DNA of 64,000 bases, taken from positions 62,001 through 126,000 of IMG/VR virus record IMGVR_UViG_3300023184_000024. One strand, given 5' to 3'. Position numbers and translations under genes: made by a program. Below, one piece after another: positions 21,102 through 48,614 of this stretch. How positions within the stretch are numbered: position 1 is the first letter of the stretch; each line of letters starts with the position of its first letter. Below the pieces are notes generated by a model, which saw only the letters and a list, made by a program, of their open reading frames with translations, was not told the origin of the DNA and did not search any database.

Positions 21102-21675
21102 ATTTACAAAAAACTATCCCGGTGACTATCTGCATTGCGGGCAAATGGATTTGCCGTGGGAACAAATACACCGGGACTTGCAAACGGTTGCAGACGAACA
21201 AACTAAAAATTGGTCAATCATTGACAACGGTGCTTACCAGGATAATGCCAGTGTTCTACAAAATGAATACAAAAAATACGGTTACAATCAACACAACACA
21301 CAAAGTTGGAAAACCACAAACTTTGACCCTAAAATTAACTTCGAATGGGAAAATTTAATTGCTGAAGTATTGCCCTTGGACAATGCTGTTGTTACAATAC
21401 ACAGACAAGATCCAGGACAGGTGTTGCCTTGGCACATTGATCGATTTTTCATGCACAAGCGTTTGTATCCCAACGACGAAAGACCAATTTGGAGATTTCT
21501 GGTATTCTTGGAAGAATGGCAGAATGGACATGTATTGCAGGTAGGCAACTCCGTGTTGCATCACTGGCAACAAGGTGACACTGTAGTATGGACACCAGGA
21601 ACATGGCACTTGGCTGCCAACGTAGGTCTAAATAAAAAGTGGACTGCTAACATCACAGGATTTTTAAAAGTTTAA
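21094..21675 (+). CDS. 2OG-Fe(II) oxygenase / cupin-fold protein
   Basis: LPWHID (HxD) and distal WHLAAN His; double-stranded beta-helix pattern. Confidence 0.7.
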   Translation: MIEFTKNYPGDYLHCGQMDLPWEQIHRDLQTVADEQTKNWSIIDNGAYQDNASVLQNEYKKYGYNQHNTQSWKTTNFDPKINFEWENLIAEVLPLDNAVVTIHRQDPGQVLPWHIDRFFMHKRLYPNDERPIWRFLVFLEEWQNGHVLQVGNSVLHHWQQGDTVVWTPGTWHLAANVGLNKKWTANITGFLKV

Positions 21676-23240
21676 TGACGCAAGATAATTTAACCTCTAA
21701 GCAAAACGATTACGCTGTGTTTCTACCAGCAATATCGGGCTTCTATGCCACGTTCATAGGTAAACAGCGTGATCCTATGAACGGACCATATGTGGAGCCT
21801 GCACGTATGCCACAGGGCATGCCTGACATGGAACAGATGAATTGGCTCAACAGTCAACAGGCATTGTTTCCATACAAGTGGTCATTGTACTCAGGTGGTC
21901 ACGCCAACCTAGACTTGAACAAACAAGACTGGTCAGAAGACATGGTTCGTAATCGTGAACCTGGCACTGTAATCTTAGGCGACTCGGGTGGTTTCCAAAT
22001 TGCCAAAGGCCTATGGGAAGGTGACTGGAAAGCCAACTCGGGTTGCGGCAAGGCACAAAAGAAGCGCGATGCTGTGCTCAAGTGGTTAGACGGGGTTTCT
22101 GACTATGGCATGATCTTGGATATTCCCACATGGGTTATCCATGACAAGAAAGCATCAGCGGCTTGTCAAATTACCACACTGCAAGAAGCTGTGGATGCTA
22201 CCAAGTTCAACAATGAATACTTCATGGCTCATCGCAAGGGTGTTAAAAATGGTGGTGCCAAGTTCTTGAACGTGTTGCAGGGCGCCAATCATGCTGACGC
22301 AGATCGCTGGTACGACATGATGAAACACTACTGCGATCCTGCACAATACCCTGACACACATTTCAATGGGTGGTCAATGGGCGGACAAAACATGTGCGAT
22401 GTGCATTTGGTGCTACGACGACTAGTAGCACTGCGTCACGACAACCTGCTACAGCAAGGTGTTCATGATTGGATGCACTTCTTGGGCACATCAAAGTTGG
22501 AATGGGCTGTGTTACTCACCGTGATTCAAAGAGCAGTTAGAAAATACGTTAATCCGTCTTTTACTATCTCCTTTGATTGTGCCAGCCCATTCCTTGCCAC
22601 AGCCAATGGACAGGTCTACCATGAAATTGTGTTGCCGCACGATGGCAAGTGGTCATATAGAATGAATCCCATTGTAGATGACAAAAAGTATGCCGCAGAC
22701 ACAAGGCCCTTTGGGCAAGCAGTGGTAGCAGACGGTTTGGTTGATAAGTTTGATGAAAGCCCAATCAGTCTCAATTTGCAAATGAAAGACATTTGTTATT
22801 ACAAGCCTGGTGATTTGAACAAGATCGGTAAAGAAGGCAAGACTTCGTGGGATAGTTTTAGCTATGCCTTGCTGATGGGTCACAATGTTTGGTTGCATTT
22901 GGAATCTGTGCAACGTGCCAATCGTGAGTTTGATGCAGGCTCTAGACCCAGAATGATGTGGGATGTCAACGGCAGTCATGAAAAGTTTGAGGACATTGTT
23001 GAGGCCATATTTGCCACTCCAGATCGAGCCACAGCTGAGGCTATTATTGAGAACTATGATCGTTATTGGATGGATATTGTAGGTACACGTGGATTCAAAG
23101 GTAAAAAGGCAAAGAACGCACATACTCAATTCAATGCACTGTTTGAAATTGGAAAAGTTGAAGTTGACGGGGGATCCGATGATAGTGTACAATTAGATAC
23201 ACTGGCACTAGATCAACTTGAGCAGGAACAAAAAATATGA
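21675..23240 (+). CDS. tRNA-guanine transglycosylase superfamily protein, probable DNA 7-deazaguanine transglycosylase (DpdA-like)
   Basis: LGDSGGFQ, MILDIP, LNVLQG, HFLGTS and SFDCAS TGT-type motifs; lacks the tRNA-TGT zinc motif; co-occurs with folE/queD/queE. Confidence 0.75.
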   Translation: MTQDNLTSKQNDYAVFLPAISGFYATFIGKQRDPMNGPYVEPARMPQGMPDMEQMNWLNSQQALFPYKWSLYSGGHANLDLNKQDWSEDMVRNREPGTVILGDSGGFQIAKGLWEGDWKANSGCGKAQKKRDAVLKWLDGVSDYGMILDIPTWVIHDKKASAACQITTLQEAVDATKFNNEYFMAHRKGVKNGGAKFLNVLQGANHADADRWYDMMKHYCDPAQYPDTHFNGWSMGGQNMCDVHLVLRRLVALRHDNLLQQGVHDWMHFLGTSKLEWAVLLTVIQRAVRKYVNPSFTISFDCASPFLATANGQVYHEIVLPHDGKWSYRMNPIVDDKKYAADTRPFGQAVVADGLVDKFDESPISLNLQMKDICYYKPGDLNKIGKEGKTSWDSFSYALLMGHNVWLHLESVQRANREFDAGSRPRMMWDVNGSHEKFEDIVEAIFATPDRATAEAIIENYDRYWMDIVGTRGFKGKKAKNAHTQFNALFEIGKVEVDGGSDDSVQLDTLALDQLEQEQKI

Positions 23241-23746
23241 ATAGAGAAGGACACAACAATACCAAATTCTTTACCGGGGTAGAAGTAGAACATACTCCTG
23301 CGTTCGGTAAAAAAACATTGTTTGTAGTGGGGATACAACCAGTTGCTGACATTGCGTTAAATCTAAATGGGTGTGAGCACATTTATTTTGGTGCCAATAT
23401 GAGTTTCCCGTCAAGCATACGCACCAACGATGCTGTGTTCTGGAATCCATGGGAACATATGATTGAGCACTTTTTATCCAGAGGATATACGTGTACCTTA
23501 GACATCAATGTTTCTCAAGTAGAAGGCTTGCTAGAAACTGGATTATGCGAATACAACAATTTTATTCCCATGATATCTGTTAAGTTGCCGTATGCAAGAC
23601 AACTTGGATATAATGCCACAATCAAAATTGACGACAAAGATTTTGCCGCAACCAATCCAGGAGTTTGGTGTCATAGCGTACACGATTTGATGGCAAGAGA
23701 TAAATTCACAGACTGGAATCAATATAAAAAAGATGAGGTGTTATAA
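23237..23746 (+). CDS. Conserved hypothetical protein translationally coupled to the TGT-like gene
   Basis: ATGA overlap; FTGVEVEHTP..GKKTLFVVG and HIYFGAN motifs. Confidence 0.65.
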   Translation: MNREGHNNTKFFTGVEVEHTPAFGKKTLFVVGIQPVADIALNLNGCEHIYFGANMSFPSSIRTNDAVFWNPWEHMIEHFLSRGYTCTLDINVSQVEGLLETGLCEYNNFIPMISVKLPYARQLGYNATIKIDDKDFAATNPGVWCHSVHDLMARDKFTDWNQYKKDEVL

Positions 23747-26678: not shown

Positions 26679-27122
26679 ATGAATCAAGAGCAACGAGATC
26701 GAATTGAAAGATGTAAACAATATGCAGATAGAAAAATCTGGGTTACCTTCCGCAAAGAAGGAATCCACAAATACCCCGCTGCCGCTAGTGATCCAATGCT
26801 GGCGACCGGTGATGAATATGATGTGTCTTTTCTTGGGGTGCCTCATCGACACATCTTTCATTTCCGAGTTTGGATCGATGTTTTTCATAATGATCGCGAT
26901 ATTGAATTCATCCAGTTCAAACGCTGGTTGGAAAAGCTCTATGCCGGCGGAACACTTGAACTCAACTTCAAAAGTTGCGAAATGATCTCAGATGATCTGT
27001 ACCTGCAGATTGCTCAAGGGTATCCTGACCGTTCGGTCTGGATTGAAGTGGCTGAAGATGGCGAGAACGGCGCTTTGATCAAATATGAAATTTCTCGCCC
27101 AAGTTTATCAATTGTAAATTAA
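26679..27122 (+). CDS. QueD-paralog T-fold protein, DpdL-like (putative 7-carboxy-7-deazaguanine decarboxylase)
   Basis: FLGVPHRHIF = LxxxHRHxF in place of QueD CxxxHGHxY; SCEMI and EVAEDGENG T-fold C-terminus. Confidence 0.65.
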   Translation: MNQEQRDRIERCKQYADRKIWVTFRKEGIHKYPAAASDPMLATGDEYDVSFLGVPHRHIFHFRVWIDVFHNDRDIEFIQFKRWLEKLYAGGTLELNFKSCEMISDDLYLQIAQGYPDRSVWIEVAEDGENGALIKYEISRPSLSIVN

Positions 27123-27133
27123 AAAGGAATAGT

Positions 27134-27373
27134 ATGGCCAAGCCTACAATCAAATCCAACCCACGTGTGGCCGAAATCCTCGAAGAGCTGGAAGGCTTTT
27201 TAGAATTCTGTCAAGACTATGGTTATCGGTATAACGAAGCCGACATGTATAACTTCAAGAGTTATGCATTCCAACAATACAGCAAATTCATGCAGGGCAA
27301 GAACGCTAAGAATATGTGGGACGAGGACACTCGAAGATTTGCTGGTTACACTAGTAGACCAACATATAGATGA
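27134..27373 (+). CDS. Hypothetical protein
   Basis: AAGGA RBS; 79 aa. Confidence 0.65.
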   Translation: MAKPTIKSNPRVAEILEELEGFLEFCQDYGYRYNEADMYNFKSYAFQQYSKFMQGKNAKNMWDEDTRRFAGYTSRPTYR

Positions 27374-28262: not shown

Positions 28263-29462
28263 ATGAGAAAACTATTTTACATGGGCTTGGAAAGTTACGA
28301 AGCCCGTTACACACTACAGCTCACGGAATGGAACCGACGTGTGTTTGACCGTAGAGGTCTTGATGTCGTTTATGTTCCTGGAACCACTATTGACAATAGC
28401 CAAGCTATTTCAGTGGGGCAAGTGCTAGACGCACACGGACGCAGTTATTTCGGCATGAGCCAAATGATGAACTTAGTTCAACTAATGAAGAATGGAGAAG
28501 TTACCAATGCGGATGTTATCTACTTTGAAGACATGTTTCAACCCGGCATCGAGAGTCTTCCTTACATCCTTAATCAAGTTCCTGCTGATCAACGTCCTCG
28601 TGTGTATGTTCGTTGTCTTGCTCAGTCCATTGATCCTGATGACTTCGTACATGTATGGGGTATGGCGAAATGGATGGGCCTCTACGAACAAATGGTTAAC
28701 GAGTTCGTGGACGGGGTTCTTGCCACCAACGAGGAGATGGTTGCTCATATGCGCATTGCTGGATGGCGTGCTCCTATATATAATATTAGTGGCCTAGCAT
28801 TTGGCAAATCGGAAGTGCTAGAGCGCATTGGTGGTGTAGAGAATATCCGGCCTTTCCAGGATCGCAAGAGACGAGTTGGGTTTGCCGCAAGGTTTGATCA
28901 GGAAAAACAACCAGACTTTTACATGGACTTGATTGAGATGTATCACAATCAAGGACACCATAAGGACATCGAGTTTGCTATTTTCTCAGGCGGGCCGTTG
29001 CGTAGCAATAATCCAAAGTACTTGGAACGTGCTTACAAACTGGCAGGAGAGGGCAAACTCAACATTTATGAGGATCTAAAGAAGAACGATTACTATGATC
29101 TCCTCAACGATACTCGTGTGCTGTTTAATTGTGCTCTCCAAGATTGGGTCTCAAACACTGTCAGTGAAGCAGATACCCTCGGAGCCAACGTTCTATATCC
29201 TGCTTATCGCAGTTTCCCTGAAACTTTTGCAAATGACCCTAACAGGCTCTACATTCCCTGGAGTATAGATGATGCTTTCCATAAATTAGAAAATCTCCTT
29301 GACTCTCCACATCACAACATGGGCCTGATCAGTGACTGGAACGATGGCACAATTGATCGTGTTGTTGATATCATTGACGGTAATGGCGAGCAATGGAATC
29401 GTGCTGGTAATCGTTACCGGGACCATGTGGCTGGTGCTAAGTATCCTGTAAGGAAAATTTAA
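28263..29462 (+). CDS. GT-B fold glycosyltransferase
   Basis: FAARFDQEKQPD and LFNCALQDWVSNTVSEA..LGANVLYP (GT4-like E-x7-E region). Confidence 0.75.
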   Translation: MRKLFYMGLESYEARYTLQLTEWNRRVFDRRGLDVVYVPGTTIDNSQAISVGQVLDAHGRSYFGMSQMMNLVQLMKNGEVTNADVIYFEDMFQPGIESLPYILNQVPADQRPRVYVRCLAQSIDPDDFVHVWGMAKWMGLYEQMVNEFVDGVLATNEEMVAHMRIAGWRAPIYNISGLAFGKSEVLERIGGVENIRPFQDRKRRVGFAARFDQEKQPDFYMDLIEMYHNQGHHKDIEFAIFSGGPLRSNNPKYLERAYKLAGEGKLNIYEDLKKNDYYDLLNDTRVLFNCALQDWVSNTVSEADTLGANVLYPAYRSFPETFANDPNRLYIPWSIDDAFHKLENLLDSPHHNMGLISDWNDGTIDRVVDIIDGNGEQWNRAGNRYRDHVAGAKYPVRKI

Positions 29463-35101: not shown

Positions 35102-35106
35102 ATATC

Positions 35107-35128
35107 TTTGTCACACAAAGGTGACAAA
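35107..35128. promoter_or_regulatory. Perfect inverted repeat TTTGTCAC-N6-GTGACAAA upstream of folE
   Basis: 8-bp perfect palindrome between a late-promoter-like ATAAATA (35098) and the folE RBS. Confidence 0.45.
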
Positions 35129-35166
35129 CTTTTCAATTATTAATCCGTGTAAGGAAGGAAAACAAA

Positions 35167-39161: not shown

Positions 39162-39186
39162 CACCAAATTCTATTACTGCTATACT
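39158..39186 (+). promoter_or_regulatory. sigma70-type promoter
   Basis: GGTTGACA-N17-TATACT upstream of the S8 protease gene. Confidence 0.75.
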
Positions 39187-39211
39187 AACAGTTCTTTAAT
39201 TAGGAGTCTAC

Positions 39212-41173
39212 ATGAAAGTAAAACCTTTAGCACTAGCCATTACACAGCTATTGTCCTATCCAGTATTTGCACAATCGTTTATGGGCACACCCACTCCGGT
39301 GTTTAGTACCAACCCAAATCAATGGTTAAACAGCACAACAATTAATAAAGCCAACGAAACAATCAAGGCAAACTATGCTTGGAGTCGCGGATGGACCGGC
39401 AAAGGCAGTACCATTCTAATCATGGACACCGGTATCGATGTCAACAATGTTGACTTTGCCGGCAAAATCAAATATCAACTTGATATCAGCAAAACTGGTA
39501 TCCAGGACACTGTCGGGCACGGTACTCACACTGCTGGAATTGCTGCCGCGGCCTTCAACAATGTTGGTATCACCGGCGTGGCCTTTGATGCCAATCTTGC
39601 CATTGCTAAATTAAGCAATACTTCCAATGTCACCAGCGGCCAAGCACTACAGGCCCTGAATTGGGCACGTCAATATTCGGATATAACTGTGGCCAACTTT
39701 AGTGCCAACACTGCATATTCGTCTGCATACACCAAAAGTGTGACACAGTTTGCACCAGGTGTTTATTCCAGTAGCGACAAAAACTACGGTGGCGTCAACT
39801 ATTATAATTTAGAGAAACCTGAATCTTGGGCGTCAGCACTGAGCCCAAACATGGTTCTCACCGTCAGTGCTGGTAACTCTGCAAATCCATATCCACAGAA
39901 TCCAGCTACATTTGCCGCGGCCACTGACCGGTCGGGAAAATTAGTGTTGAACGGCCAAATGATAATTGTGGGCAATTGGAATACACTAGCAGGACGGGTA
40001 GAAGGTGCACAGGCAGGACACGTCTGCAAAAACATTGTCGGTACAACTTGCAAAGACACATTCCGAACTTCCGACTTTTATATTTTAGCACCAGGCATGT
40101 CTGTAGTCAGCGATGCCATTGGCGGCGGAGTTAAAGCAATGAGCGGAACCAGTCAGGCCGCACCACAGGTTGCAGGAGCAGTGGCAGTTATTGGCCAAAT
40201 GTGGCCATACATGACTCCTGCCAATCAAGTTCAGTTGTTGCTAAAAACAGCCAACAAGAACTTGCCTAACTACAATGTCAATGTCATGGGACAAGGTTTA
40301 CTAGATCTCGAAGCCGCAACAAGGCCGGTTGGTCCATTGGGGATTTCAATGACTGGGCGTACTGGCGTTGTTGTTCCTATTTCCGGGGCAATTGCACTCA
40401 GCAATACCGGCACACAAACAGTGTCTAAATTAAGTTCAATTTCAGCAGTTGATTCGTTTCAAAGAGATTTCACTGTGAATTTATCACCAATGGTGGTAAA
40501 GAATTCGCTGATGGCTGATTCCATTACCATGGATGCAGACCCAGGATTCAGCTGGAGTGGACGGTGGACTGGATTGGTAGCTGGACAAAATCAGTCTGCG
40601 CCACTATCGGGCGTTCAATCTTCCAATGGCGACAGCACTGTCACCATCGACTCGAAAGCCTTTGACCCCAAAGCTGAAAGGTCGCATCAACTCACATTGA
40701 CCAACAGCAAATTCAATCCTTTTGTAAACTTTTCTGGAGCATGGGGACAAACAACTGGATCTACCACTTTAGAATACAGCATGTCACAACAGTTTGATTC
40801 TGGGTGGTGGGCACAAGTTGGTGCAATGCAAACATCAGTAAATCACACCGCAGGCTTGGTTAGTAGTGTAACTCCTGTTAGTGCGCTACATGCTGTGGGT
40901 GGCCGACAAATTGGAGATTTAAATGTGTTTGCTGGCATTAAGCCTACAGTGGTGCACGGCTATGTAAATATGCTGGCACCAACCAGTGTAGATGCCGATG
41001 GTGTTATGTCTTATACTCAAATTAAAAATAATCTAGCAGGCTCTGCAACTGTGGGCTATGCTGGATTTAAATGGACGCATAGTGTCAGTCGAGAAGGTAA
41101 GTTGACTTTCCGAGGACAGGTAGCACAAGACGGTAGTGCCAATGCCAAACTATATTACATACATCAACTATGA
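39212..41173 (+). CDS. Secreted subtilisin (S8) serine protease with beta-rich C-terminal domain (autotransporter-like)
   Basis: Signal peptide MKVKPLALA...VFA; triad IMDTGID, GHGTH, SGTSQAAP; VSAGN oxyanion residue. Confidence 0.9.
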   Translation: MKVKPLALAITQLLSYPVFAQSFMGTPTPVFSTNPNQWLNSTTINKANETIKANYAWSRGWTGKGSTILIMDTGIDVNNVDFAGKIKYQLDISKTGIQDTVGHGTHTAGIAAAAFNNVGITGVAFDANLAIAKLSNTSNVTSGQALQALNWARQYSDITVANFSANTAYSSAYTKSVTQFAPGVYSSSDKNYGGVNYYNLEKPESWASALSPNMVLTVSAGNSANPYPQNPATFAAATDRSGKLVLNGQMIIVGNWNTLAGRVEGAQAGHVCKNIVGTTCKDTFRTSDFYILAPGMSVVSDAIGGGVKAMSGTSQAAPQVAGAVAVIGQMWPYMTPANQVQLLLKTANKNLPNYNVNVMGQGLLDLEAATRPVGPLGISMTGRTGVVVPISGAIALSNTGTQTVSKLSSISAVDSFQRDFTVNLSPMVVKNSLMADSITMDADPGFSWSGRWTGLVAGQNQSAPLSGVQSSNGDSTVTIDSKAFDPKAERSHQLTLTNSKFNPFVNFSGAWGQTTGSTTLEYSMSQQFDSGWWAQVGAMQTSVNHTAGLVSSVTPVSALHAVGGRQIGDLNVFAGIKPTVVHGYVNMLAPTSVDADGVMSYTQIKNNLAGSATVGYAGFKWTHSVSREGKLTFRGQVAQDGSANAKLYYIHQL

Positions 41174-41580
41174 CCTACAACATAATCACAGATCTCGAAC
41201 AAGCACAAGAAAACAAAATTGCGCCATGGGATGATCTCAACGAGGATCTCACAGATTATCACGTAGCTGTATTCCGAGACCGATTTCCGGTTACCAATGG
41301 ACACTTGTTGTTCGTGCCTAAATACAATGTTCATGCCGTGATCATGGATTGTTTTGAAATGGCTCTTAAAAAAGGGCAGGACATGGTAGCACAAGGTGAA
41401 TGTGATGCGTTCAATGTTGGTATCAACATGGGCCAGGCTGCTGGTCAGACTGTGATGTATCCACATGTGCATTTAATTCCTAGACGGGTAGGCGATTGTG
41501 CAGATCCTGTAGGCGGTGTGCGTGGCGTAGTTTCTGGTCAAGCGAACTACAAAACCCACAGTTACCAGGAACCAAAATGA
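41170..41580 (+). CDS. HIT family hydrolase
   Basis: FPVTNGHLLFVP; GQTVMYPHVHLIPR histidine triad. Confidence 0.92.
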   Translation: MTYNIITDLEQAQENKIAPWDDLNEDLTDYHVAVFRDRFPVTNGHLLFVPKYNVHAVIMDCFEMALKKGQDMVAQGECDAFNVGINMGQAAGQTVMYPHVHLIPRRVGDCADPVGGVRGVVSGQANYKTHSYQEPK

Positions 41581-41775: not shown

Positions 41776-42327
41776 ATGCAATCATCAACACAAGAATTAA
41801 TCAACCACATGGAAGATAACTTCTCAAACACTAGACCGGTAGTTTACAAATATACTAGTACCAAAGAGTATCACGACGCATTTCCATGTGCGTACAGACA
41901 ATGGAGGGCCGACAGTCATTGTAACTTGATACACGGTTATTCGTTTAGTATGAAATTTTACTTTGGCACCAACGACCTAGATGTTCGCAACTGGGCGGCC
42001 GACTATGGTGGTTTAAAAGAACTAAAAAAGACACTAGAAGATCAATTTGACCACACTCTAATTGTGGCACAAGATGATCCAGAGATGGCAACATACAACT
42101 TGTTGGTAGAGAAAAAAATGGCCAAGGTAGTTGTACTGCCTAAATTGGGATGTGAAGGCTTGAGTGACATGCTGTACAAGTATGTGAATGGTGTTTACAT
42201 TCCAGAGATGTGGGGACCAGGAGAGGCTGCTAGACTTTGGTGTTATCGTGTGGAAGTGCGCGAAACGCAAGCAAACATGGCTTTCCGTGAAGGTCACCGC
42301 GAGTGGAATGAAGACCTATTTGCATAA
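41776..42327 (+). CDS. queD: 6-carboxy-5,6,7,8-tetrahydropterin synthase
   Basis: SHCNLIHGYS (CxxxHG), LEDQFDHTLI, GCEGL, EVRETQAN. Confidence 0.88.
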   Translation: MQSSTQELINHMEDNFSNTRPVVYKYTSTKEYHDAFPCAYRQWRADSHCNLIHGYSFSMKFYFGTNDLDVRNWAADYGGLKELKKTLEDQFDHTLIVAQDDPEMATYNLLVEKKMAKVVVLPKLGCEGLSDMLYKYVNGVYIPEMWGPGEAARLWCYRVEVRETQANMAFREGHREWNEDLFA

Positions 42328-42354: not shown

Positions 42355-42873
42355 ATGAAAAATATACCCAACGTAACATTTGCCTTCCGCGAAGGCGACG
42401 AAACTCCCAAAGATGGCGGCTGCCCAATCGGAGGAGAATTTGTTTTTAAAACCACAGCAGATTTGTTTGCCAACAAACGTGTGGTAGTGTTCAGCTTGCC
42501 AGGTGCATTCACACCAACTTGCAGTACCTACCAATTGCCAGGATTTGAGCAACAGTATGCTGAGTTCAAAGCCAAAGGCATTGATGAAATTTACTGCATC
42601 AGTGTCAACGACGCATTTGTCATGAATGCTTGGGCACAAGCATTAAACATCAAAAATGTCAAAGTCATTCCTGACGGTGCGGCTGGATTTACATCAGGCA
42701 TGAACATGCTGGTTGATCTGAGTGCTATTGGATTTGCCTGGCGCAGTCGACGTTATGCGGCCATTATCAACAACGGTGTGGTGGAACACATGTTCGAGGA
42801 ACCAGCATCAAGTGACAACGACCCTGATCCATACGGCGTTTCCAGTCCTGAGAATGTGATGAAGCATCTGTAA
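42355..42873 (+). CDS. Peroxiredoxin (Prx5-like redoxin)
   Basis: SLPGAFTPTCS, SVNDAFVM, RSRRYA. Confidence 0.93.
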   Translation: MKNIPNVTFAFREGDETPKDGGCPIGGEFVFKTTADLFANKRVVVFSLPGAFTPTCSTYQLPGFEQQYAEFKAKGIDEIYCISVNDAFVMNAWAQALNIKNVKVIPDGAAGFTSGMNMLVDLSAIGFAWRSRRYAAIINNGVVEHMFEEPASSDNDPDPYGVSSPENVMKHL

Positions 42874-42881
42874 GAAAAATT

Positions 42882-43247
42882 ATGTTTAGTGTTTTAAAGT
42901 TTATATACATACTGTTTAAGGCTTTTAGAGACGGAATCAATCCCAATCTTAACAGTCTACGTTATGCGCCAACTTATGTAAAATATCTAACTAGCATTTT
43001 GTTGGCCTGTTTCTGGTGTTTGGCTTTTGGAATTTACATTGGTGAATTACTGACCATTGGTTATAACATGATTGGACACATTGCTCTCATCAGCATGGCC
43101 TTTGCCACAGGTATTGTCATGCAGGTGTTTAAACGCACATACGGCCCTAGACAGGGCTCAGTGGATTATTTACGTATGCCTGACAGAAGCAGCCGGTGCG
43201 ATGAACTTACAGATGAACAGCGCAGAGAATTGGCCACAAGAATATGA
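42882..43247 (+). CDS. Small membrane protein
   Basis: Two hydrophobic segments. Confidence 0.6.
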   Translation: MFSVLKFIYILFKAFRDGINPNLNSLRYAPTYVKYLTSILLACFWCLAFGIYIGELLTIGYNMIGHIALISMAFATGIVMQVFKRTYGPRQGSVDYLRMPDRSSRCDELTDEQRRELATRI

Positions 43248-43408
43248 ACGATTTAAAATTTACCACAGCCGGCGAATACATGACAGATGACAAGTGTGAC
43301 GGTACTTGCATCATAAATGCAGAAGATGAATGCTGGTGTGGTCGCAAGTGGGACGGAGAGAAAATGTGTGCATCAATGGCAGATGACAATGTGTACTACG
43401 GAGCATAA
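43244..43408 (+). CDS. 54-aa Cys-containing hypothetical protein (below ORF-track cutoff)
   Basis: MNDLKFTTAGEY...CDGTC...CWCG; fills the gap with ATGA overlap. Confidence 0.55.
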   Translation: MNDLKFTTAGEYMTDDKCDGTCIINAEDECWCGRKWDGEKMCASMADDNVYYGA

Positions 43409-43410
43409 TC

Positions 43411-44061
43411 ATGTTAGAAACAATTTGCGATACATTAGTTGAAGCATATAGACGCAACTGGATTACCAGTCGTGATGGCAATGTCTCAATTCGTCATCAC
43501 GACCGTGATCACTTTTACATCACGCCCAGTGGTGTGCGTAAACAGACAATGCAACCGGATCAGTTTAAGAAGATTGGGATTGAACAAGGCTACTATGACC
43601 AACCTCCTAGACCATACTATTCTTGGAAAGAATTGGCATATACAGACATTAGTGAGAAGCTAAAACCTAGTGGAGAAATACCACTACACTTTGGATTACA
43701 ACGAGAAATGGGTCAACATAGAGACGATGTTAGAGTTGTAGTTCATTTACACCCCACTTACTGCATTGCCGCAATGCATGCCGGTATTGATTTAAGCACT
43801 ATCAGCAAAGCGTTTCCAGAACTTAATCGTTATACCAAGGTAGCACCCAATGTGGGAGATGTGCCACCTATCAGCCAAGAGCTTGCGGATCAATGCCATA
43901 AAAATCTTGGATTAGATAATGCAGGTAACATTGAGTATGATATAGTAGGTATCAAAGGTCACGGTGTTGTTGCCATTGACACAAGCCCATGGCGTGCATT
44001 TGAACACATTGAACGATTAGAACATATTTGTCAAATCGTATTAGCATCAGGTAAATTTTAA
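43411..44061 (+). CDS. Class II aldolase/adducin family protein
   Basis: SRDGNVS, YITPSG, PSGEIPLH, VVHLHP, IKGHGVVA. Confidence 0.88.
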   Translation: MLETICDTLVEAYRRNWITSRDGNVSIRHHDRDHFYITPSGVRKQTMQPDQFKKIGIEQGYYDQPPRPYYSWKELAYTDISEKLKPSGEIPLHFGLQREMGQHRDDVRVVVHLHPTYCIAAMHAGIDLSTISKAFPELNRYTKVAPNVGDVPPISQELADQCHKNLGLDNAGNIEYDIVGIKGHGVVAIDTSPWRAFEHIERLEHICQIVLASGKF

Positions 44062-44071
44062 GGAGAAAATT

Positions 44072-44761
44072 ATGTTTGGAACAACTTATACCGGTGGAAT
44101 TGCATATCGTTCTGCCAGCGAAATCAACTCAGCAATGGGCCGTGTCTATGGACATATGAGTCTTGCTGTTATTGTATCAATGATTGTTAGTTACTTTGTA
44201 GGCACTAGCCCAGAGTTATTAGCATTCTTTTTTACTGGCATGCTAAAGTGGATTGTGATCTTTGCACCATTGGTAGCAATCTTTGGTATCACTATTTTGC
44301 TAAACGCAAGTCCAACTAAACAGATGGCACAGTTATGCTTACACGGCTTCGCGGCGCTGATGGGACTGAGTTTTGCCACAATATTTGCTGTGTTCACTAT
44401 GGGCAGTATTGTGTCAGCATTTATGGGTGCGGCAATACTGTTTAGTGTTATGAGTGGCTATGGGTACTTTACCAAACAGAGCCTAGATAGTGTTGGTAAG
44501 TTTATGTTTGTGGGATTGATTGCTATCATCATTGCCAGCATTGTCAATATCTTTATTGGTAGCACAGTTATGCAAATGGTAATCAGTGCGTTGGCAATCA
44601 TCATCTTTCTTGGATTGACTGCATATGATACTCAAAAGATTCGAGAAGAAGTCAGCTTAGATACCAGCGATGTTGTGGAGATTCGCGGAGCACTAACACT
44701 TTACATGGATTTTATCAACCTGTTTATCAATCTCTTAAATCTGTTTGGTGATAGAAAATAA
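44072..44761 (+). CDS. Bax inhibitor-1/YccA family membrane protein
   Basis: Seven hydrophobic segments; GLTAYDTQKI and ALTLYMDFINLF. Confidence 0.9.
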   Translation: MFGTTYTGGIAYRSASEINSAMGRVYGHMSLAVIVSMIVSYFVGTSPELLAFFFTGMLKWIVIFAPLVAIFGITILLNASPTKQMAQLCLHGFAALMGLSFATIFAVFTMGSIVSAFMGAAILFSVMSGYGYFTKQSLDSVGKFMFVGLIAIIIASIVNIFIGSTVMQMVISALAIIIFLGLTAYDTQKIREEVSLDTSDVVEIRGALTLYMDFINLFINLLNLFGDRK

Positions 44762-44778
44762 TATATCACTGACAAAAT

Positions 44779-44970
44779 ATGAATAGTTTAGAAAAAATTT
44801 GGGCAAGAGCAACTGGTCATTTGATGGGGTCTTCGGATTCTGATAGACCAGACGTTCCTATTCTCACATTGAGAGAAGCCAGGATTGCACTGTTTTTAAA
44901 AACTTTCTGGGTCATACTACATGTAATAACATGTGGTTTTATCATAGCAAATGTGATACATAATTGGTAG
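44779..44970 (+). CDS. Small hypothetical membrane protein
   Basis: WARATGHLMG..D.D.PDVP pattern with a hydrophobic tail. Confidence 0.6.
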   Translation: MNSLEKIWARATGHLMGSSDSDRPDVPILTLREARIALFLKTFWVILHVITCGFIIANVIHNW

Positions 44971-44973
44971 AAG

Positions 44974-45783
44974 ATGACAAATACTAACATAACTTTATTA
45001 TTACCGACAAGAGGTCGGCCCGACGCACTGGATCGAAGCATTACTAGTTTACTTGACAATGCCGAGCACCCTGAGTCTATTCAATGGTTGTTGGCATTTG
45101 ACAACGATGACCGTGAGTCTTATCAACATTTCAAAGACAATGTTTTGAAAAAAATCAAAGATTCCGGCGGTACATACAGTTGCATGGAGTTTCCTCCACT
45201 GGGGTATGGTCGCTTGCACGAATATCTAAATGCACTTGCCAAACACGGCACCGGAGATTGGTTTGTGTTTTGGAATGATGATGCAGTCATGATAGACAAA
45301 GGTTGGGACACTGTTATTACCAGCCATACTGGGACATTTTGTGTGCAAGCATTTAATACACACAACATGCATCCTTACAGTATATTTCCTATTATTCCAA
45401 AAGAATGGTATGCGTTGTTGGGGCATCTTAGCCAACACTCGCTCAACGATGCTTGGATCAGTCAGATTGCTTGGATGTTAGATATCATGGTAAGAATTCC
45501 TGTCAAAGTAGAACATGACAGATTTGATCTCACAGGAAAGAACGAAGACGCTACTTATAAAAATAGAGAAGTGTTTGAAGGCAACCCCCGTGATCCTAGA
45601 GATTTTAATCATGTGTTGAATCGAAAAAAACGATATGATGAAGGTCAAATCATTGCAACCTATCTTGAATCCAAAGGGTTAGACATGACCCACTGGCACC
45701 AAATAAAGTCAGGAAAAAAAGATCCTTGGAGTAAAATGTTGGCCAGTGATGTCAACCATCAGATGGTAAGAGTTGAGCCTTAG
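44974..45783 (+). CDS. GT-A (family 2-like) glycosyltransferase
   Basis: LLLPTRGRP; FWNDDAVM DxD; FPIIPKEW; DAWISQ. Confidence 0.7.
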   Translation: MTNTNITLLLPTRGRPDALDRSITSLLDNAEHPESIQWLLAFDNDDRESYQHFKDNVLKKIKDSGGTYSCMEFPPLGYGRLHEYLNALAKHGTGDWFVFWNDDAVMIDKGWDTVITSHTGTFCVQAFNTHNMHPYSIFPIIPKEWYALLGHLSQHSLNDAWISQIAWMLDIMVRIPVKVEHDRFDLTGKNEDATYKNREVFEGNPRDPRDFNHVLNRKKRYDEGQIIATYLESKGLDMTHWHQIKSGKKDPWSKMLASDVNHQMVRVEP

Positions 45784-45794
45784 AAACACACGCA

Positions 45795-46541
45795 ATGATT
45801 GCAACAAACGAAGCGCAAGAGATACAGTTTCCGCAAAACGATAAAATATTAGATCAAGTAATTGATTCAATTCGGCATGAGAGAAAAGAGCACTTACAAG
45901 ATCCATATTATCTTGAATATAAACTACTTCCTAAACTAGGGTTAAGTGATCGATTGATACAACATTATCCAGATCATCTACATCAATATTGTGGGACAGG
46001 AGTTGATAGTTTGCAGTATCCCAATCAATTTTCAAAATATCTTGCACACTTGGCAACTAAAAAAATCAAGTCCTACGCAGAAATAGGTTGTTATAAAGGT
46101 GGTGCATTTATCATTGCTTGCGAATATCTAAGTAGATTTCACGAATTAGAAATGTGCATTGCCTGTGATCCGTGGCCCAGATACATCATGATGCAGTACG
46201 CCGAACGCAGGCCCAACGTGGTCTACATCACAGACAGCAGTCATAACCCAAAATTTAAAGATCTATACCTGTCTAGAAAATGGGATATGACGTTTATAGA
46301 TGGTAACCAATCCTATCAAAGTGTTGTGCAGGACTACAACATGGTGAGTTCTAATACAAAAATGTTTGCTGTAAATAATATAAAAAATGTATTTTATCCC
46401 GGACCTCAACAATGTTGGGATGAGATTAAAACCTTGCATAAAAAAGATCAACTCATTGAATGGACTGATCAATACGACGATGTGCTGTTGCGCATGCGTG
46501 GGTCAGTCATGGGAATTGGATTTGTAGAGCATTCTGGTTAA
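45795..46541 (+). CDS. Methyltransferase-like protein
   Basis: YAEIGCYKGG, ACDPWP, FIDGNQSY..V..DY. Confidence 0.65.
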   Translation: MIATNEAQEIQFPQNDKILDQVIDSIRHERKEHLQDPYYLEYKLLPKLGLSDRLIQHYPDHLHQYCGTGVDSLQYPNQFSKYLAHLATKKIKSYAEIGCYKGGAFIIACEYLSRFHELEMCIACDPWPRYIMMQYAERRPNVVYITDSSHNPKFKDLYLSRKWDMTFIDGNQSYQSVVQDYNMVSSNTKMFAVNNIKNVFYPGPQQCWDEIKTLHKKDQLIEWTDQYDDVLLRMRGSVMGIGFVEHSG

Positions 46542-46587
46542 ACATGTTAATTTAATCTATTGCTTTTTCTTTGTAAACCTGTTATAA

Positions 46588-47715
46588 TTGTTAATGACTA
46601 GCCTGTTAGACACCGAGCAACATTGGGATAATAAAAATTGCGAATACGATTTGCAGACTTATAACTGGCCTGCGTGGACTCTGAAAGTCATACAAGAAAT
46701 TGTACCCGAAGTCACAGAGTTAGAAAAATTACACACATTCCTTGACCCTGCTGGCGTTGTCAAGGTCACACAACATGTGCAAAATGCATGTAGTCGACAA
46801 GAATTTATGACAATGTTTGATCAATTTGCCAATGACATTGTACCTCAAAGGATTGACAACAAGCAATACCTAGTGCAAAGACAAGGCACACTTAGAGTTG
46901 TTGTCCCAAATCAATCTTCTTACCATCGACGCTTGCCATTTCACAATGATTTTTTTGCTGGTAACGGTCGTGGATTAAGAACCGTTTGGATCCCGTTGAC
47001 CAAATCATATTATTCTAATACCATGTGGATGGTTGATCTGCCCACATCTAGGCGACTGGCACGACAGTTGGTTCAAGAAAAATGGAAACTGGAACGGTTT
47101 GAAAAAGAATGCATGAAGTATGCCTTTCCAGTTAACCTAAGCCCTGGACAATGCCATTTGTTTTTACAAGAGCACTTACATGGCAATGTCAACAATGAAG
47201 AAAACTATACCAGGGTGAGTTTAGATATGCGAATAATGGTCAGAGGCGAAGAGTACGGCCGCAAGACACCCGGGGGCTATCTACGGTTACCCGGTGATTA
47301 CGGCACCCCCAACAAAGATTATTCAGGCAAAACTTTTTTAACCTACGCTAGTTGGAATTCAGAATACTCAAGGCACATTCCGTTGCCCATGCAAAGATCT
47401 ATAATAGAACGATACTGTTCATCAAACAACATTAGATACAACGAGTATGCAGCCGATTTTGATCATTTGGATTATCAACCAGCATTGGAACAATGCATAC
47501 AACACAAGCCAGACGGTATAGTACTAACTAGTATGTTTTCATTGACAGATGATAAAACACGCAGAGACGAACTACTTGACTTGGCACTAGACTTGGGTGT
47601 ACAATTACATTTTGCCAACGAATGTTGTGCATTATGCAATCGGGTAGATCTCGAGAAAGTACAAACTTATTTAAACTTTGGGTTGGTCAAAAGCCGACCA
47701 TATGAATGGGAATAA
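46588..47715 (+). CDS. Fusion of 2OG-Fe(II) oxygenase and sporadic-carbohydrate-cluster-like domain
   Basis: LPFHND (HxD), HLHGNVNN.E..TRVSLDMR; C-terminal IPLPMQR.II..YC...DGIVL.S.FSL...LHFANE. Confidence 0.6.
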   Translation: MLMTSLLDTEQHWDNKNCEYDLQTYNWPAWTLKVIQEIVPEVTELEKLHTFLDPAGVVKVTQHVQNACSRQEFMTMFDQFANDIVPQRIDNKQYLVQRQGTLRVVVPNQSSYHRRLPFHNDFFAGNGRGLRTVWIPLTKSYYSNTMWMVDLPTSRRLARQLVQEKWKLERFEKECMKYAFPVNLSPGQCHLFLQEHLHGNVNNEENYTRVSLDMRIMVRGEEYGRKTPGGYLRLPGDYGTPNKDYSGKTFLTYASWNSEYSRHIPLPMQRSIIERYCSSNNIRYNEYAADFDHLDYQPALEQCIQHKPDGIVLTSMFSLTDDKTRRDELLDLALDLGVQLHFANECCALCNRVDLEKVQTYLNFGLVKSRPYEWE

Positions 47716-47729
47716 CACAGGAAGCGCAC

Positions 47730-48614
47730 ATGGAAAAAATTACATACACAGAAATCTTTTACAGTTTGCAAGGCGAGGGACGTTGGGCAGGAGTGCCCAG
47801 TGTTTTCTTCCGCACATTTGGCTGTAATCTTCGTTGCAAGAAATTCGGCAGGGATCGCAATGAAGTCATCGACGGGCCTAACCCCGAAGTTGTTGAGATC
47901 ATTCGCAACATTGACAAGTACAACAAGTTTGAAGAATTGCCATTGGTGACTTCGGGCTGTGACACTTATGCCAGTATCTATCCAGAATTTAAAAAGTTCA
48001 ACGAGCAGGGCACAGTTGAAGAAATTGTGGGCAAGATGCATGACATGATCCCGGGACAGCAATGGAGTGGAGTCAACGGGCTAGATGACGTACACTTGGT
48101 GATCACAGGTGGTGAACCGTTTTTGGCATATCAACAACTGTACCCAGAAATGATTCAACAGTGTCGGGATCGTGGACTGAGGAATCTAACATTCGAAACC
48201 AACGGTACTCAACCATTGTACGACAATGTTCGTGAATACTTGTTTGAAGAGTTTACTCGCCATGGCAGGGATTATGACCGGTTGACATTCAGTGTCAGTC
48301 CCAAGCTTCCGTGTTCAGGTGAGTCTTGGGACAAGGCCATCAATCCCAAGATCATCAAAGAGTATGAAAGTGTGGGCATGACTTACTTGAAGTTTGTTGT
48401 GGGCACTGAGCAGGACTTGCGTGATGTAGACCGTGCTGTGGAAGAGTTCCGTAGTGCAGGGTTTGGTGGGCCTGTGTATTTGATGCCCATTGGTGGTGTG
48501 CCGGGTGTATACAATCTAAATACACAACAAGTTGCCACCTTGGCCATGCGCCGTGGCTATCGCTACAGTCCAAGACTGCAAGTTGATATCTGGCGCAATG
48601 CCTGGGGTACATAA
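47730..48614 (+). CDS. queE: 7-carboxy-7-deazaguanine synthase (radical SAM)
   Basis: EIFYSLQGEG, FFRTFGCNLRC..(40 aa)..GCDT, ITGGEP, ETNGT, SVSPKL, PRLQVDIW. Confidence 0.9.
   Translation: MEKITYTEIFYSLQGEGRWAGVPSVFFRTFGCNLRCKKFGRDRNEVIDGPNPEVVEIIRNIDKYNKFEELPLVTSGCDTYASIYPEFKKFNEQGTVEEIVGKMHDMIPGQQWSGVNGLDDVHLVITGGEPFLAYQQLYPEMIQQCRDRGLRNLTFETNGTQPLYDNVREYLFEEFTRHGRDYDRLTFSVSPKLPCSGESWDKAINPKIIKEYESVGMTYLKFVVGTEQDLRDVDRAVEEFRSAGFGGPVYLMPIGGVPGVYNLNTQQVATLAMRRGYRYSPRLQVDIWRNAWGT

Follow-up and report, generated by a model that had tools for sequence, protein, structure and literature searches.

A predicted 7-deazaguanine DNA-modification module with a proposed new DpdA-like transglycosylase in an uncultured freshwater jumbo phage

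Among the closest known systems is that of Cellulophaga phage phiST, which encodes FolE, QueD, QueE, DpdL and DpdA3 but no QueC, and in whose DNA all dG was shown by LC-MS to be replaced by 7-deazaguanine (dDG) (PMC10516641). DpdL, the predicted 7-carboxy-7-deazaguanine (CDG) decarboxylase, is reported only in phages that have FolE, QueD and QueE and lack QueC (PMC10516641). A second arrangement is found in Acidovorax phage ACP17, Xanthomonas phages X1/BUDD and Synechococcus phage BUCT-ZZ01, where a DpdA2 transglycosylase (34-37% identical to nt-1 DpdA2), a GT4-like glycosyltransferase and DpdL lie next to QueE, FolE and QueD; the DNA modification of these phages has not been determined. The DpdA2 enzymes of Vibrio phages nt-1 and VH7D were shown experimentally to insert preQ0/preQ1, and traces of CDG, into DNA (PMC6884629, PMC10516641). 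The nt-1 enzyme works with QueC and ArcS to give dPreQ0 and dG+ at low substitution levels, and its cluster has no DpdL, glycosyltransferase or 169-aa partner of the kind described below. Finally, the DNA of Pseudomonas jumbo phage PA5oct (Wroclawvirus) is experimentally resistant to restriction at G-containing sites. The only paper addressing this modification in the literature we searched names QueE and a PTPS but no transglycosylase, and the PA5oct genes concerned are annotated as hypothetical.

We analysed a 64-kb stretch (hereafter, the window; positions 62,001 to 126,000 of IMG/VR record IMGVR_UViG_3300023184_000024) of the approximately 353-kb genome of an uncultured freshwater jumbo phage distantly related to PA5oct. 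A first-pass annotation, made from the sequence alone, had proposed a 7-deazaguanine pathway consisting of FolE, QueD, QueE, a QueD paralog and a divergent 521-aa transglycosylase, dispersed over 27 kb and without QueC in the window. This observation is confirmed: all five genes exist at or near the positions given, all on the + strand, the only shift being the start of QueE, which we place at 47706 rather than 47730. The features of the region are as follows.

15881-18538, + strand: family B DNA polymerase (PolB), a neighbour of the module and not part of the pathway
19519-20250, + strand: conserved 243-aa protein, homolog of PA5oct gp314, which was detected in virions
21675-23240, + strand: 521-aa TGT-fold enzyme (fold from a predicted model), the proposed DNA guanine transglycosylase
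23237-23746, + strand: 169-aa conserved partner of unknown function (nb169), overlapping the stop codon of the TGT-like gene
26679-27122, + strand: DpdL, the predicted CDG decarboxylase (the QueD paralog of the first-pass annotation)
27134-27373, + strand: small conserved ORF (79 aa) of unknown function directly after DpdL
28263-29462, + strand: GT4-like (GT-B) glycosyltransferase, role in the pathway unknown
29466-41173, + strand: inserted cargo, a sugar-nucleotide-type gene set in which FolE is embedded
35167-35847, + strand: FolE, GTP cyclohydrolase I (step 1, GTP to H2NTP)
41170-41580, + strand: HIT-family protein, role unknown but nucleotide-related
41776-42327, + strand: QueD, 6-carboxytetrahydropterin synthase (step 2)
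44974-45783, + strand: 269-aa GT2-like protein, role unknown
47706-48614, + strand: QueE, radical-SAM 7-carboxy-7-deazaguanine synthase (step 3)

The three base-making enzymes are identified as follows. FolE matches PF01227 (E 1.3e-61) and the NCBIfam FolE equivalog NF006824 (322.6 bits against a cutoff of 202) and is 63% identical to ACP17 FolE and 58% to PA5oct FolE. QueD matches PF01242 (E 5.4e-15) and PHROG 2389 'QueD-like' (1e-34), is 48% identical to ACP17 QueD and shares the CxxxHGY motif with the QueD proteins of phiST and ACP17. QueE matches PHROG 2076 'QueE-like' (1.1e-49), while NCBIfam QueE models match its N-terminus only and below their cutoffs; the protein contains the GGEP motif and a ~40-aa insert between the second and third cluster cysteines, and C40, C44 and C85 are invariant in an alignment with the QueE proteins of PA5oct, ACP17 and phiST.

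The protein previously noted only as a QueD paralog is DpdL. It carries the LxxxHRHxF signature (LGVPHRHIF, nt 26832-26858), matches PHROG 17812 (7e-36) and in tblastn comparisons is 57% identical to ACP17 gp125 (2e-39), 55% to PA5oct gp318 and 35% to phiST CGPG_00067 (2e-9). Our own profile comparison did not recover the relationship between DpdL and QueD (7.7%).

No QueC was found in the window. The SGGxDS motif of the PP-loop does not occur in any of the six frames, tblastn with QueC of E. coli and nt-1 returned nothing at E<=1, and Pfam scans of most window ORFs of about 100 aa or more revealed no QueC, QueF, ArcS, DpdM or DpdN. A search for queC in the rest of the genome had been named in advance as a test of the proposal; the other ~289 kb of the source contig (Ga0214919_10000005) were not examined for queC or queF, but QueC is absent from all 80 related viral loci inspected and from the complete genome of PA5oct.

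The 521-aa protein matches no Pfam, PHROG, NCBIfam or PADLOC model, the only NCBIfam signal being arcTGT at E 0.18. Its predicted structure is nevertheless confident (AlphaFold pLDDT 89.1, pTM 0.88), except that the C-terminal ~50 aa form a disordered acidic tail. In a Foldseek search of the PDB the top 17 hits are all TGT or arcTGT (E 8e-7 to 2e-5), and the next fold appears at E>=1e-2. Alignment of the family profile with hhalign gives 92%/6e-7 for E. coli Tgt, 96.5%/9e-10 for ACP17 DpdA2 and 92%/6e-7 for nt-1 DpdA2; nt-1 DpdA2, the best-characterised structural neighbour, is also matched by Foldseek (E 1.4e-9). The three catalytic Asp of the TGT superfamily align with D103 (GDSGGFQ), D149 (LDIP) and D301 (SFDCASP), which are conserved in 58/58, 57/58 and 58/58 members of the family, as is H268 (58/58). 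The protein shares with bacterial Tgt (PF01702) the TIM-barrel fold and the aligned motifs DSGGFQ, LD, QG, GxxxGG, LG and FDC, but is only about 15% identical to it, has a different C-terminal half, gives no PF01702 hit and lacks the CxCxxC...H zinc site. The CxCxxC motif is likewise missing from phage DpdA1, DpdA2 and DpdA3, and nt-1/VH7D DpdA2 shares the TGT-fold core with DSGG and the (Y/F)D(S/C) nucleophile motif.

The suggestion that the long TGT-like protein may be a distinct DpdA clade had come with phylogeny against DpdA1-4 and tRNA TGTs as its stated test. In our comparisons the protein lies outside DpdA1, DpdA3, DpdA4 and bacterial DpdA and is a long-branch sister to DpdA2, placed on a separate branch of length ~3 in the tree. 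It is reached from DpdA2 only by profile methods (pairwise BLAST 8e-4; HMM E 1e-4 for ACP17 and 0.07 for nt-1). It is not the DpdA3 of phiST: CGPG_00065 is 259 aa long and lacks DSGG, hhalign gives only 68% over 83 columns, and the HMM E-value is 25. phiST also has a MazG-like protein and an AAA kinase-like protein but no GT4-like, nb169 or HIT partner. The biosynthetic logic is the same in both, with FolE, QueD of the CxxxHGY type, QueE, DpdL with the LxxxHRHxF signature and no QueC, and in both cases a distant TGT-superfamily protein lies beside replication genes.

The 27-kb dispersion is a local expansion and not a property of the system. In 80 related viral contigs, and in about 15 MAG-binned loci, the genes lie in one fixed order, PolB, virion protein, TGT-like gene, nb169, DpdL, GT4-like glycosyltransferase, FolE, HIT, QueD and QueE, which in the viral contigs occupies about 10 kb. 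PolB (PF00136, 2.7e-36; PF03104, 1.6e-19; 50% identical to the split PolB of PA5oct) is upstream of the TGT-like gene in 78/80 related loci, and so is the 243-aa protein, at a median of 0.9 kb upstream; the latter is 32% identical to PA5oct EST35_0314 ('structural protein, ESI-MS/MS'). Among the 43 loci with >=4 kb of downstream sequence, both nb169 and DpdL are present in 43/43. The small ORF after DpdL is 57% identical to a 73-aa ORF in the same position in L063 (related loci are designated L with a number), and a homolog occurs in 50/80 related loci. The cargo of the window, judged by Pfam hits, comprises a 4,6-dehydratase, C-methyltransferase, epimerase, aminotransferase, 2OG oxygenase, hexapeptide acyltransferase, MFS transporter, AMP-binding enzyme and S8 peptidase, and is mostly absent from the compact relatives L063 and L069, where the genes from the glycosyltransferase through FolE, HIT and QueD to QueE span about 7 kb.

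Three conserved partners, nb169, the GT4-like glycosyltransferase and the HIT protein, had been overlooked in the first-pass annotation, and they leave room for a product other than plain dDG. The nb169 protein is a homolog of ACP17 gp122, the gene directly upstream of ACP17 DpdA2 (32% identity, 7e-14), and of PA5oct EST35_0364 (44%), and among isolated phages it was found only in PA5oct-like phages and ACP17; it has no Pfam or PHROG hit, and its AlphaFold model (pLDDT 87.6) has no structural match in the PDB below E 0.09. The GT4-like protein gives weak PF00534/PF13524 matches, below the gathering thresholds, and is 22% identical (8e-12) to ACP17 gp124, which itself weakly matches PF20706, 'GT4 in conflict systems'; orthologs sit next to DpdL in relatives. 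Homologs of ACP17 gp124 lie beside DpdL and/or the transglycosylase in ACP17, PA5oct, Phosso, Xanthomonas X1/BUDD and BUCT-ZZ01, and about 3 kb from DpdL in BCSR5, but are absent from the QueC-type DpdA2 clusters of nt-1 and pf16. The HIT protein (PF01230, 5e-11) is 56% identical to the HIT ORF next to QueD in L063 and is present beside FolE or QueD in L100, L101, L103 and L107. The GT2-like protein (weak PF00535 hit), found between QueD and QueE in some relatives, is 47% identical to the 270-aa ORF in that position in L063.

PA5oct provides a syntenic counterpart, with PolB, gp314, gp316 (31% identical to the 521-aa protein over 98% of its length), DpdL gp318, QueE gp322 and RNase H gp325, while FolE, QueD and nb169 lie elsewhere in its genome. 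Its module is compact, with the glycosyltransferase directly between gp316 and DpdL, it has no sugar-nucleotide cargo, and its PolB is split by a homing endonuclease. In ACP17, X1 and BUCT-ZZ01, where DpdA2, the glycosyltransferase and DpdL are adjacent, DpdA2 occupies the same position as the TGT-like gene does here. An independent tie to deazaguanine metabolism is that members of the family from bacterial genomes sit next to QueC in L129, L171 and L173.

Taken together, the interpretation that the DNA carries a CDG-derived base rather than preQ0 or G+, and that the enzyme is a distinct DpdA clade, is supported, and the presence of DpdL with the absence of QueC from the window, the 80 related loci and the PA5oct genome favours dDG over dCDG. 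With moderate confidence, we propose that FolE, QueD and QueE convert GTP to CDG, that in the absence of QueC the pathway cannot proceed to preQ0, and that DpdL instead decarboxylates CDG to 7-deazaguanine (DG). The 521-aa enzyme would then exchange guanine in phage DNA for the deazaguanine base through a covalent Asp301-deoxyribose intermediate, with Asp103 as general acid/base and Asp149 reading the base. Our data establish the identities of the base-making enzymes as well as the fold and active-site residues of the transglycosylase, whereas the activities of the former are inferred from their families, and the decarboxylation step from the phiST precedent; the identity of the base is likewise inferred, and the DNA substrate, as opposed to tRNA, is inferred only from context and from the missing Zn/tRNA features. 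The activity of DpdL has never been reconstituted, co-expression of phiST or ACP17 DpdL with their DpdA in E. coli gave no dDG (PMC10516641), and no chemical data exist for this phage or for any phage with this enzyme family. The role of the conserved partners was not tested; phiST makes dDG without the GT4-like, nb169 or HIT proteins, and their strict conservation here is unexplained and may mean a different end product. Relatives, including PA5oct with gp321, carry a phosphoribosyltransferase next to QueE, which hints at nucleotide-level chemistry.

Alternatively, it is possible, though we consider it unlikely, that the same base-making genes and transglycosylase lead to a final base other than plain dDG, the GT4-like glycosyltransferase, nb169 and the HIT protein building a further-derivatised, for example sugar-bearing, 7-deazaguanine that has not been described. 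The GT4-like gene co-varies with DpdL in several unrelated phage lineages, the 12-kb sugar-nucleotide-type gene set follows it directly in the window and would also contribute, the authors of the unsuccessful co-expression experiment suggested that enzymes were missing, and the modification in PA5oct and in ACP17-type phages has never been identified. However, phiST reaches 100% dDG with DpdL and without a glycosyltransferase, nb169 or HIT protein, 7-deazaguanine offers no obvious acceptor group at C7 after decarboxylation, and the sugar genes, which compact relatives lack, could serve the host surface or virion glycosylation instead. Less likely still, the base may be turned into a nucleotide, for example by a phosphoribosyltransferase with HIT and kinase steps, and incorporated by the adjacent PolB, leaving the TGT-like protein an accessory or different role. 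Complete replacement of G, as in phiST and CP220, is easier to reach through the nucleotide pool, the ADG nucleoside was seen in CP220-infected cells (cited in PMC10516641), and phosphoribosyltransferase genes sit next to HIT, FolE or QueE in L063, L103, L107, L111 and L168, with PA5oct gp321, next to QueE, a weak match. Yet the window has no phosphoribosyltransferase (tblastn, E<=1e-3), only 6/80 close relatives have one within 10 kb, no dGTP-clearing enzyme was found in the window, and the TGT-like gene is universal in the clade and keeps all three catalytic Asp, which argues for an essential base-exchange step.

Two further readings appear very unlikely. A preQ0-derived base would be possible if QueC, with or without QueF or Gat-QueC, lay elsewhere in the genome, of which only 64 of 353 kb were examined, or were supplied by the host, and singleton DpdA phages are known to use host preQ0 (PMC6884629); the proximity of QueC to some bacterial-genome members of the family also fits this view. 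The absence of QueC from PA5oct and the 80 related loci and the restriction of DpdL to QueC-less phages speak against it, and carrying FolE, QueD, QueE and DpdL while borrowing QueC would be an odd combination. The enzyme could also modify phage-encoded or host tRNA, for example G34 of tRNA-Asn(GUU), since its fold is that of tRNA-guanine transglycosylases and the window encodes nine tRNAs, including tRNA-Asn(GTT) at 62458-62533. However, besides lacking the Zn-binding motif it gives no hit to a PUA or C-terminal tRNA-binding domain, its nearest characterised relatives act on DNA, it is linked to DpdL and PolB and not to the tRNA genes, which lie 35 kb away, PA5oct DNA is itself modified, and no QueC, QueF or QueA is present in the window to make a tRNA-type base.

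The 521-aa enzyme belongs to a large family, comprising at least 941 clusters at 50% identity, that no searched model library names, and as a sister group of phage DpdA2 this family amounts to a further DpdA subfamily. Its three conserved partners, nb169, the GT4-like glycosyltransferase and the HIT protein, probably take part in an unknown way. For the phage, the result of the proposed pathway would be dDG-substituted DNA that resists restriction at G-containing sites, and the module most likely serves to escape restriction enzymes.

The window is one coding strand of a phage genome (GC about 0.42) and derives from contig Ga0214919_10000005 (352,754 bp) of JGI metagenome 3300023184. A megablast search of 21 kb against 50,697 phage records found nothing, so there is no close cultured relative. 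The observation made in the first-pass annotation, i.e., a set of five genes for 7-deazaguanine DNA modification in the absence of QueC, is confirmed by our analysis, as all five genes exist. The genes and other features to which we refer are the following:
414-1394, rSAM-SPASM protein, unrelated to QueE
8297-9790, GP88-family protein (PF17338)
12602-13042, ferritin-like protein
15029-15493, free-standing SPASM-domain protein just upstream of PolB, unrelated to QueE
15881-18538, PolB, intact
23237-23746, conserved 169-aa protein of unknown function (nb169)
26679-27122, DpdL, 147 aa, predicted CDG decarboxylase
28263-29462, GT4-like glycosyltransferase
29466-41173 and 42355-47715, cargo block inserted inside the module
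35167-35847, FolE
41776-42327, QueD
47706-48614, QueE
58386-63417, cluster of nine tRNA genes: Met x2, Arg(ACG), Lys(TTT), Ser(GCT), Thr(TGT), Asn(GTT), Ile(TAT, 92 nt, long for a tRNA-Ile) and Trp(CCA)
59520-61274, B12-binding radical SAM enzyme, unrelated to QueE
The ferritin-like and GP88-family proteins lie upstream of the replication block; both look like auxiliary or structural genes, and neither is linked to the module.

FolE passes the NCBIfam equivalog cutoff (322 bits against 202) and matches PF01227 at 1e-61. QueD matches PF01242 (5e-15) and the PHROG "QueD-like" family (1e-34) and has the CxxxHGY variant of the motif, as do the QueD proteins of phages phiST and ACP17. QueE, the 7-carboxy-7-deazaguanine synthase, matches PHROG 2076 "QueE-like" over its full length (1.1e-49), although the NCBIfam equivalogs score below their cutoffs. 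Its radical-SAM cluster cysteines C40, C44 and C85 are invariant across four phage QueE proteins, and are arranged as C-x3-C followed by an insert of ~40 residues before the third Cys. The same layout is found in PA5oct QueE, while ACP17 has the canonical CxxxCxxC and phiST has Cx3Cx7C. No SGGxDS motif of the QueC PP-loop ATPase occurs in any frame of the window, tblastn with E. coli and nt-1 QueC gives no match at E<=1, and Pfam scans of most window ORFs of about 100 aa or more found no QueC, QueF, ArcS, DpdM or DpdN.

The gene that the first-pass annotation called a QueD paralog is identified here as DpdL. The protein carries LGVPHRHIF at residues 52-60, which is the LxxxHRHxF signature, in place of the QueD motif CxxxHGH, by which Cui et al. 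2023 (PMC10516641) defined DpdL, their predicted CDG decarboxylase. H56, H58 and F60 are invariant in an alignment with PA5oct, ACP17, phiST and L063 (one of the related IMG/VR loci described below). By tblastn the protein is 57% identical to ACP17 gp125 (2e-39), 55% to PA5oct gp318 and 35% to phiST CGPG_00067 (2e-9). It also co-occurs with FolE, QueD and QueE in the absence of QueC. Our own test of a T-fold relationship between DpdL and QueD left this point undecided, since there was no PF01242 hit and hhalign of shallow DpdL and QueD alignments gave only 7.7%; the relationship rests on the HHpred result in PMC10516641. Phage phiST encodes FolE, QueD, QueE, DpdL and DpdA3 but no QueC, and by LC-MS its DNA has dDG in place of all dG.

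The 521-aa protein belongs to a family that no searched model library names. It has no Pfam hit at E<=0.01 and no PHROG or PADLOC hit; NCBIfam gives only arcTGT at E 0.18 (10 bits against a cutoff of 350), and phmmer and a search of PDB sequences with the family HMM failed as well. Only structure and profile-profile comparison worked. With a 58-sequence alignment, AlphaFold gives a model with pLDDT 89.1 and pTM 0.88, in which only the last ~50 residues are disordered. The 17 best Foldseek matches of this model in the PDB are all tRNA-guanine or archaeosine transglycosylases (E 8e-7 to 2e-5, probability 1.0, TM normalised to target up to 0.56), while unrelated barrels begin at E 1e-2, which assigns the predicted fold to the (beta/alpha)8 barrel of TGT type. 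Comparison of the family profile with E. coli Tgt by hhalign (92%, E 6e-7, 177 columns) lines up GDSGGFQ, LD, QG, GWxxGG, HFLG and SFDCxSP with the corresponding Tgt motifs. The residues that correspond to the TGT general acid/base, base-recognition and nucleophile Asp (D102, D156 and D280 in Z. mobilis) are D103, D149 and D301, and they are conserved in 58/58, 57/58 and 58/58 family members, respectively. The protein is not, however, a tRNA-guanine transglycosylase of the PF01702/TIGR00430 type by model match, and the zinc site CxCxxC...H of these enzymes (CDCYTC in E. coli Tgt) is absent, with no Cys column conserved at >=60% except position 374. The CxCxxC motif is likewise absent from the phage DpdA1, DpdA2 and DpdA3 sequences that we examined. 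The family is very large: there are at least 7,894 clusters at 90% identity, with contigs up to 370 kb, and at least 941 representatives at 50% identity at E<=1e-3. Three distant representatives (P0136, P0146 and P0175) lie on short contigs or beside integrases, with no pathway genes.

Among the known DpdA groups, the family is closest to DpdA2. The profile aligns with DpdA2 of ACP17 (gp123, which is 34-37% identical to the validated nt-1 DpdA2) at 96.5%, E 9e-10, and with DpdA2 of Vibrio phage nt-1 at 92.3%, E 6e-7, and the Foldseek match to the latter has E 1.4e-9. In contrast, hhalign with DpdA1 of phage 9g gives a probability of 0.35%, and DpdA1-type mycobacteriophage models reach only E 1.7e-4 in Foldseek; tblastn of E. 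coli Tgt against phages found only true tgt genes and no DpdA, so it could not serve to retrieve DpdA1. Homology to DpdA3 of the phiST/Campylobacter phage type (phiST CGPG_00065) was not found either: BLASTP gives E 3.7, hhalign 68% over 83 columns only, the HMM E 25, and DpdA3 lacks the DSGG motif. There is no match to DpdA4 of the archaeal virus type (DUF6610, PF20314) among Pfam families at E<=0.01. The criteria for bacterial DpdA of the Dpd restriction-modification island (a match to the Dpd models of PADLOC-DB, assumed to be included in it although this was not verified, and DpdB/DpdC-type neighbours) were not fulfilled, with no PADLOC hit for the window protein, for two bacterial-genome members of the family or for their conserved upstream partner. 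Membership in DpdA2 itself is left undecided by our tests. Homology is clear by profile-profile comparison, but tblastn does not connect the two families in either direction, and the family HMM scores ACP17 DpdA2 at E 1e-4 and nt-1 at 0.07 for a nominal database of 1e6 sequences. A phylogeny had been proposed in the first-pass annotation as a check of its suggestion that the protein may be a distinct DpdA clade; in our maximum-likelihood tree, to which long-branch caveats apply, five DpdA2 form a 100/99 clade on a branch of 2.96 substitutions per site, and the 21 family members group apart from them (87/97). We therefore treat the family as a separate subfamily whose nearest named relative is DpdA2, although the authors of the nomenclature may or may not choose to fold it into DpdA2.

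The window is syntenic with Pseudomonas jumbo phage PA5oct, the shared genes being PolB, gp314, gp316 (31% identical over 98% of the 521-aa protein), DpdL gp318, QueE gp322 and RNase H. PolB of PA5oct (locus L001:1605-6831) is split into two ORFs by a Hef-like homing endonuclease. Eighty IMG/VR loci carry a 64-87% identical homolog of the 521-aa protein, and their gene order is fixed and co-directional: PolB, 243-aa protein, TGT-like, nb169, DpdL, small ORF, GT4-like, FolE, HIT, QueD, GT2-like, QueE. In loci L063 and L069 all of this fits in 10 kb. All 43 loci with at least 4 kb of downstream sequence have nb169 and DpdL, and none of the 80 has QueC. The same order recurs in more divergent contigs that are deposited as parts of MAGs of implausible hosts, named Haliscomenobacter, Neomarinimicrobiota, Pacearchaeota, Methanobacteriota and Legionellales (L100, L101, L103, L105, L107 and L108; one contig is 335 kb and one 183 kb, the relatives PBPT01000016.1 and NZ_JBBAKG010000001.1). 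These are most likely mis-binned phage genomes.

The 27-kb spread of the genes, which the first-pass annotation described as dispersion, is therefore caused by cargo inserted after the GT and around FolE. The cargo comprises an NDP-sugar 4,6-dehydratase, a C-methyltransferase, an epimerase, an aminotransferase, two 2OG oxygenases, a hexapeptide acyltransferase, an MFS transporter, an AMP-binding enzyme and an S8 subtilase, followed by a peroxiredoxin, a class II aldolase and a Bax-inhibitor-like membrane protein; a methyltransferase is also part of the block. It looks like a set for the synthesis of an unusual amino or methyl deoxysugar of unknown target (DNA, virion or host surface).

A queC or queF gene elsewhere in the genome that would explain a known product had been named in the first-pass annotation as an observation that would speak against its interpretation. 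While the remaining 289 kb of the source contig were not searched, the complete 286,783-bp genome of PA5oct was. It has the TGT-like gene, GT, DpdL, a weak phosphoribosyltransferase match (gp321), QueE, FolE, two QueD-like genes and the nb169 homolog, but no match to E. coli QueC, nt-1 QueC or 9g Gat-QueC at E<=0.01, and its only SGGxDS motif lies in a TilS-like gene. The paper that addresses the modification of PA5oct DNA names QueE and a PTPS but no transglycosylase. No paper that we searched, a set that did not extend to the supplementary tables of Cui et al. 2023 where PA5oct may be classified, names a DpdA for PA5oct or any DpdA subfamily beyond DpdA4.

Several conserved partners of the module are unexplained. 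The AlphaFold model of nb169 is confident (pLDDT 87.6) but has no structural neighbour in the PDB below E 0.09 by Foldseek, and the protein has no family hit; the ESM Atlas gave uninformative scores (<=0.51) and an HMM search against the PDB gave spurious hits to designed "Cake" repeat proteins. Among isolated phages nb169 occurs only in PA5oct-like phages and ACP17, where it is gp122 and lies directly upstream of DpdA2, and it may be a new pathway component. The GT4-like protein, whose role in deazaguanine chemistry is unknown, tracks DpdL rather than the transglycosylase type across unrelated phage lineages. It lies beside DpdL and/or the transglycosylase in ACP17 (gp124, L004:7996-9024), PA5oct (gp317, L001:9617-10678), Phosso, Xanthomonas X1/BUDD and BUCT-ZZ01, and about 3 kb from DpdL in BCSR5; two of the loci are L176:4156-5322 and L177:1306-2466. 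It is absent from the QueC-type DpdA2 clusters of nt-1 and pf16 that we examined, and phiST, which has proven dDG, has no such gene in its cluster and gave no hit. A HIT protein is a further regular neighbour. Several divergent relatives add a phosphoribosyltransferase (PF00156) next to HIT, FolE or QueE (L063:18921-19454, L103, L107, L111 and L168; weakly PA5oct gp321, 226936-227370), which is absent from this window and suggests that some members convert the deazapurine base into a nucleotide.

A search of genome contigs with a 10-sequence alignment showed that the family also occurs in bacterial chromosomes (loci L115-L175) at 25-34% identity without FolE, QueD, QueE or DpdL nearby, in hosts that include Limnohabitans, Polynucleobacter, Rhodobacteraceae, sphingomonads and Azospirillum. 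In about 41 such loci, a co-directional unknown ORF of 560-680 aa ends at the start of the TGT-like gene (e.g., L116:8293-9996 with L116:10001-11239). This partner has no Pfam or PADLOC hit and no phage tblastn hit, and the weak "sliding-clamp-like" lead given by the Atlas (score 0.62) was not accepted. Three loci (L129, L171 and L173) have QueC next door. This looks like the "singleton DpdA" situation already known for other subfamilies and is an independent link to deazaguanine metabolism.

The interpretation offered in the first-pass annotation, a CDG-derived base installed by what may be a distinct DpdA clade, is supported. The gene identities, the predicted TGT fold and its active-site residues, the absence of QueC locally and in PA5oct, and the fixed gene neighbourhood come directly from our analysis, whereas decarboxylation of CDG by DpdL, the action of the enzyme on DNA and dDG as the product are inferences. 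Base exchange in DNA was not assayed, and the evidence for DNA rather than tRNA as the substrate is indirect: the context next to PolB and DpdL, the absence of tRNA-TGT features and the modified DNA of PA5oct. We consider the full chain somewhat more likely than not. We are considerably more confident in the weaker claim that this is a 7-deazaguanine DNA-modification module, and it is likely that the 521-aa protein is its transglycosylase. The pathway is of a known kind, the phiST dDG type, while the transglycosylase family and its conserved partners are not described in the libraries or papers that we could search.

The conserved partners may be the "other unknown enzymes" that Cui et al. invoked when DpdA plus DpdL gave no dDG in E. 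coli. Alternatively, they may point to a different final base. It is possible, though we hold this only tentatively, that the fixed set of TGT-like enzyme, nb169, DpdL, GT4-like glycosyltransferase and HIT protein, shared by PA5oct, ACP17-type phages and a very abundant clade of freshwater jumbo phages, makes and installs a 7-deazaguanine derivative that has not been described and is possibly sugar-bearing. The 521-aa family would then be a fifth phage DpdA subfamily with a new base specificity, and the 169-aa protein of unknown fold would be a new pathway component. A pre-replicative nucleotide route appears unlikely, a QueC encoded elsewhere in the genome or supplied by the host less likely still, and tRNA as the substrate the least likely of these possibilities.

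7-Deazaguanine DNA modifications are a major phage counter-defence, and DpdA has been proposed as their signature gene. Since this family with a predicted TGT fold is invisible to Pfam, PHROGs, NCBIfam and PADLOC, surveys that use known DpdA models would miss a whole, environmentally abundant clade of modified jumbo phages. The family supplies a concrete candidate (gp316) for the unidentified transglycosylase of PA5oct, a P. aeruginosa phage studied for therapy, whose DNA is known to be G-modified, with unknown chemistry. The association of DpdL, GT4 and nb169 points to components that may explain why dDG synthesis could not be reconstituted in E. coli.
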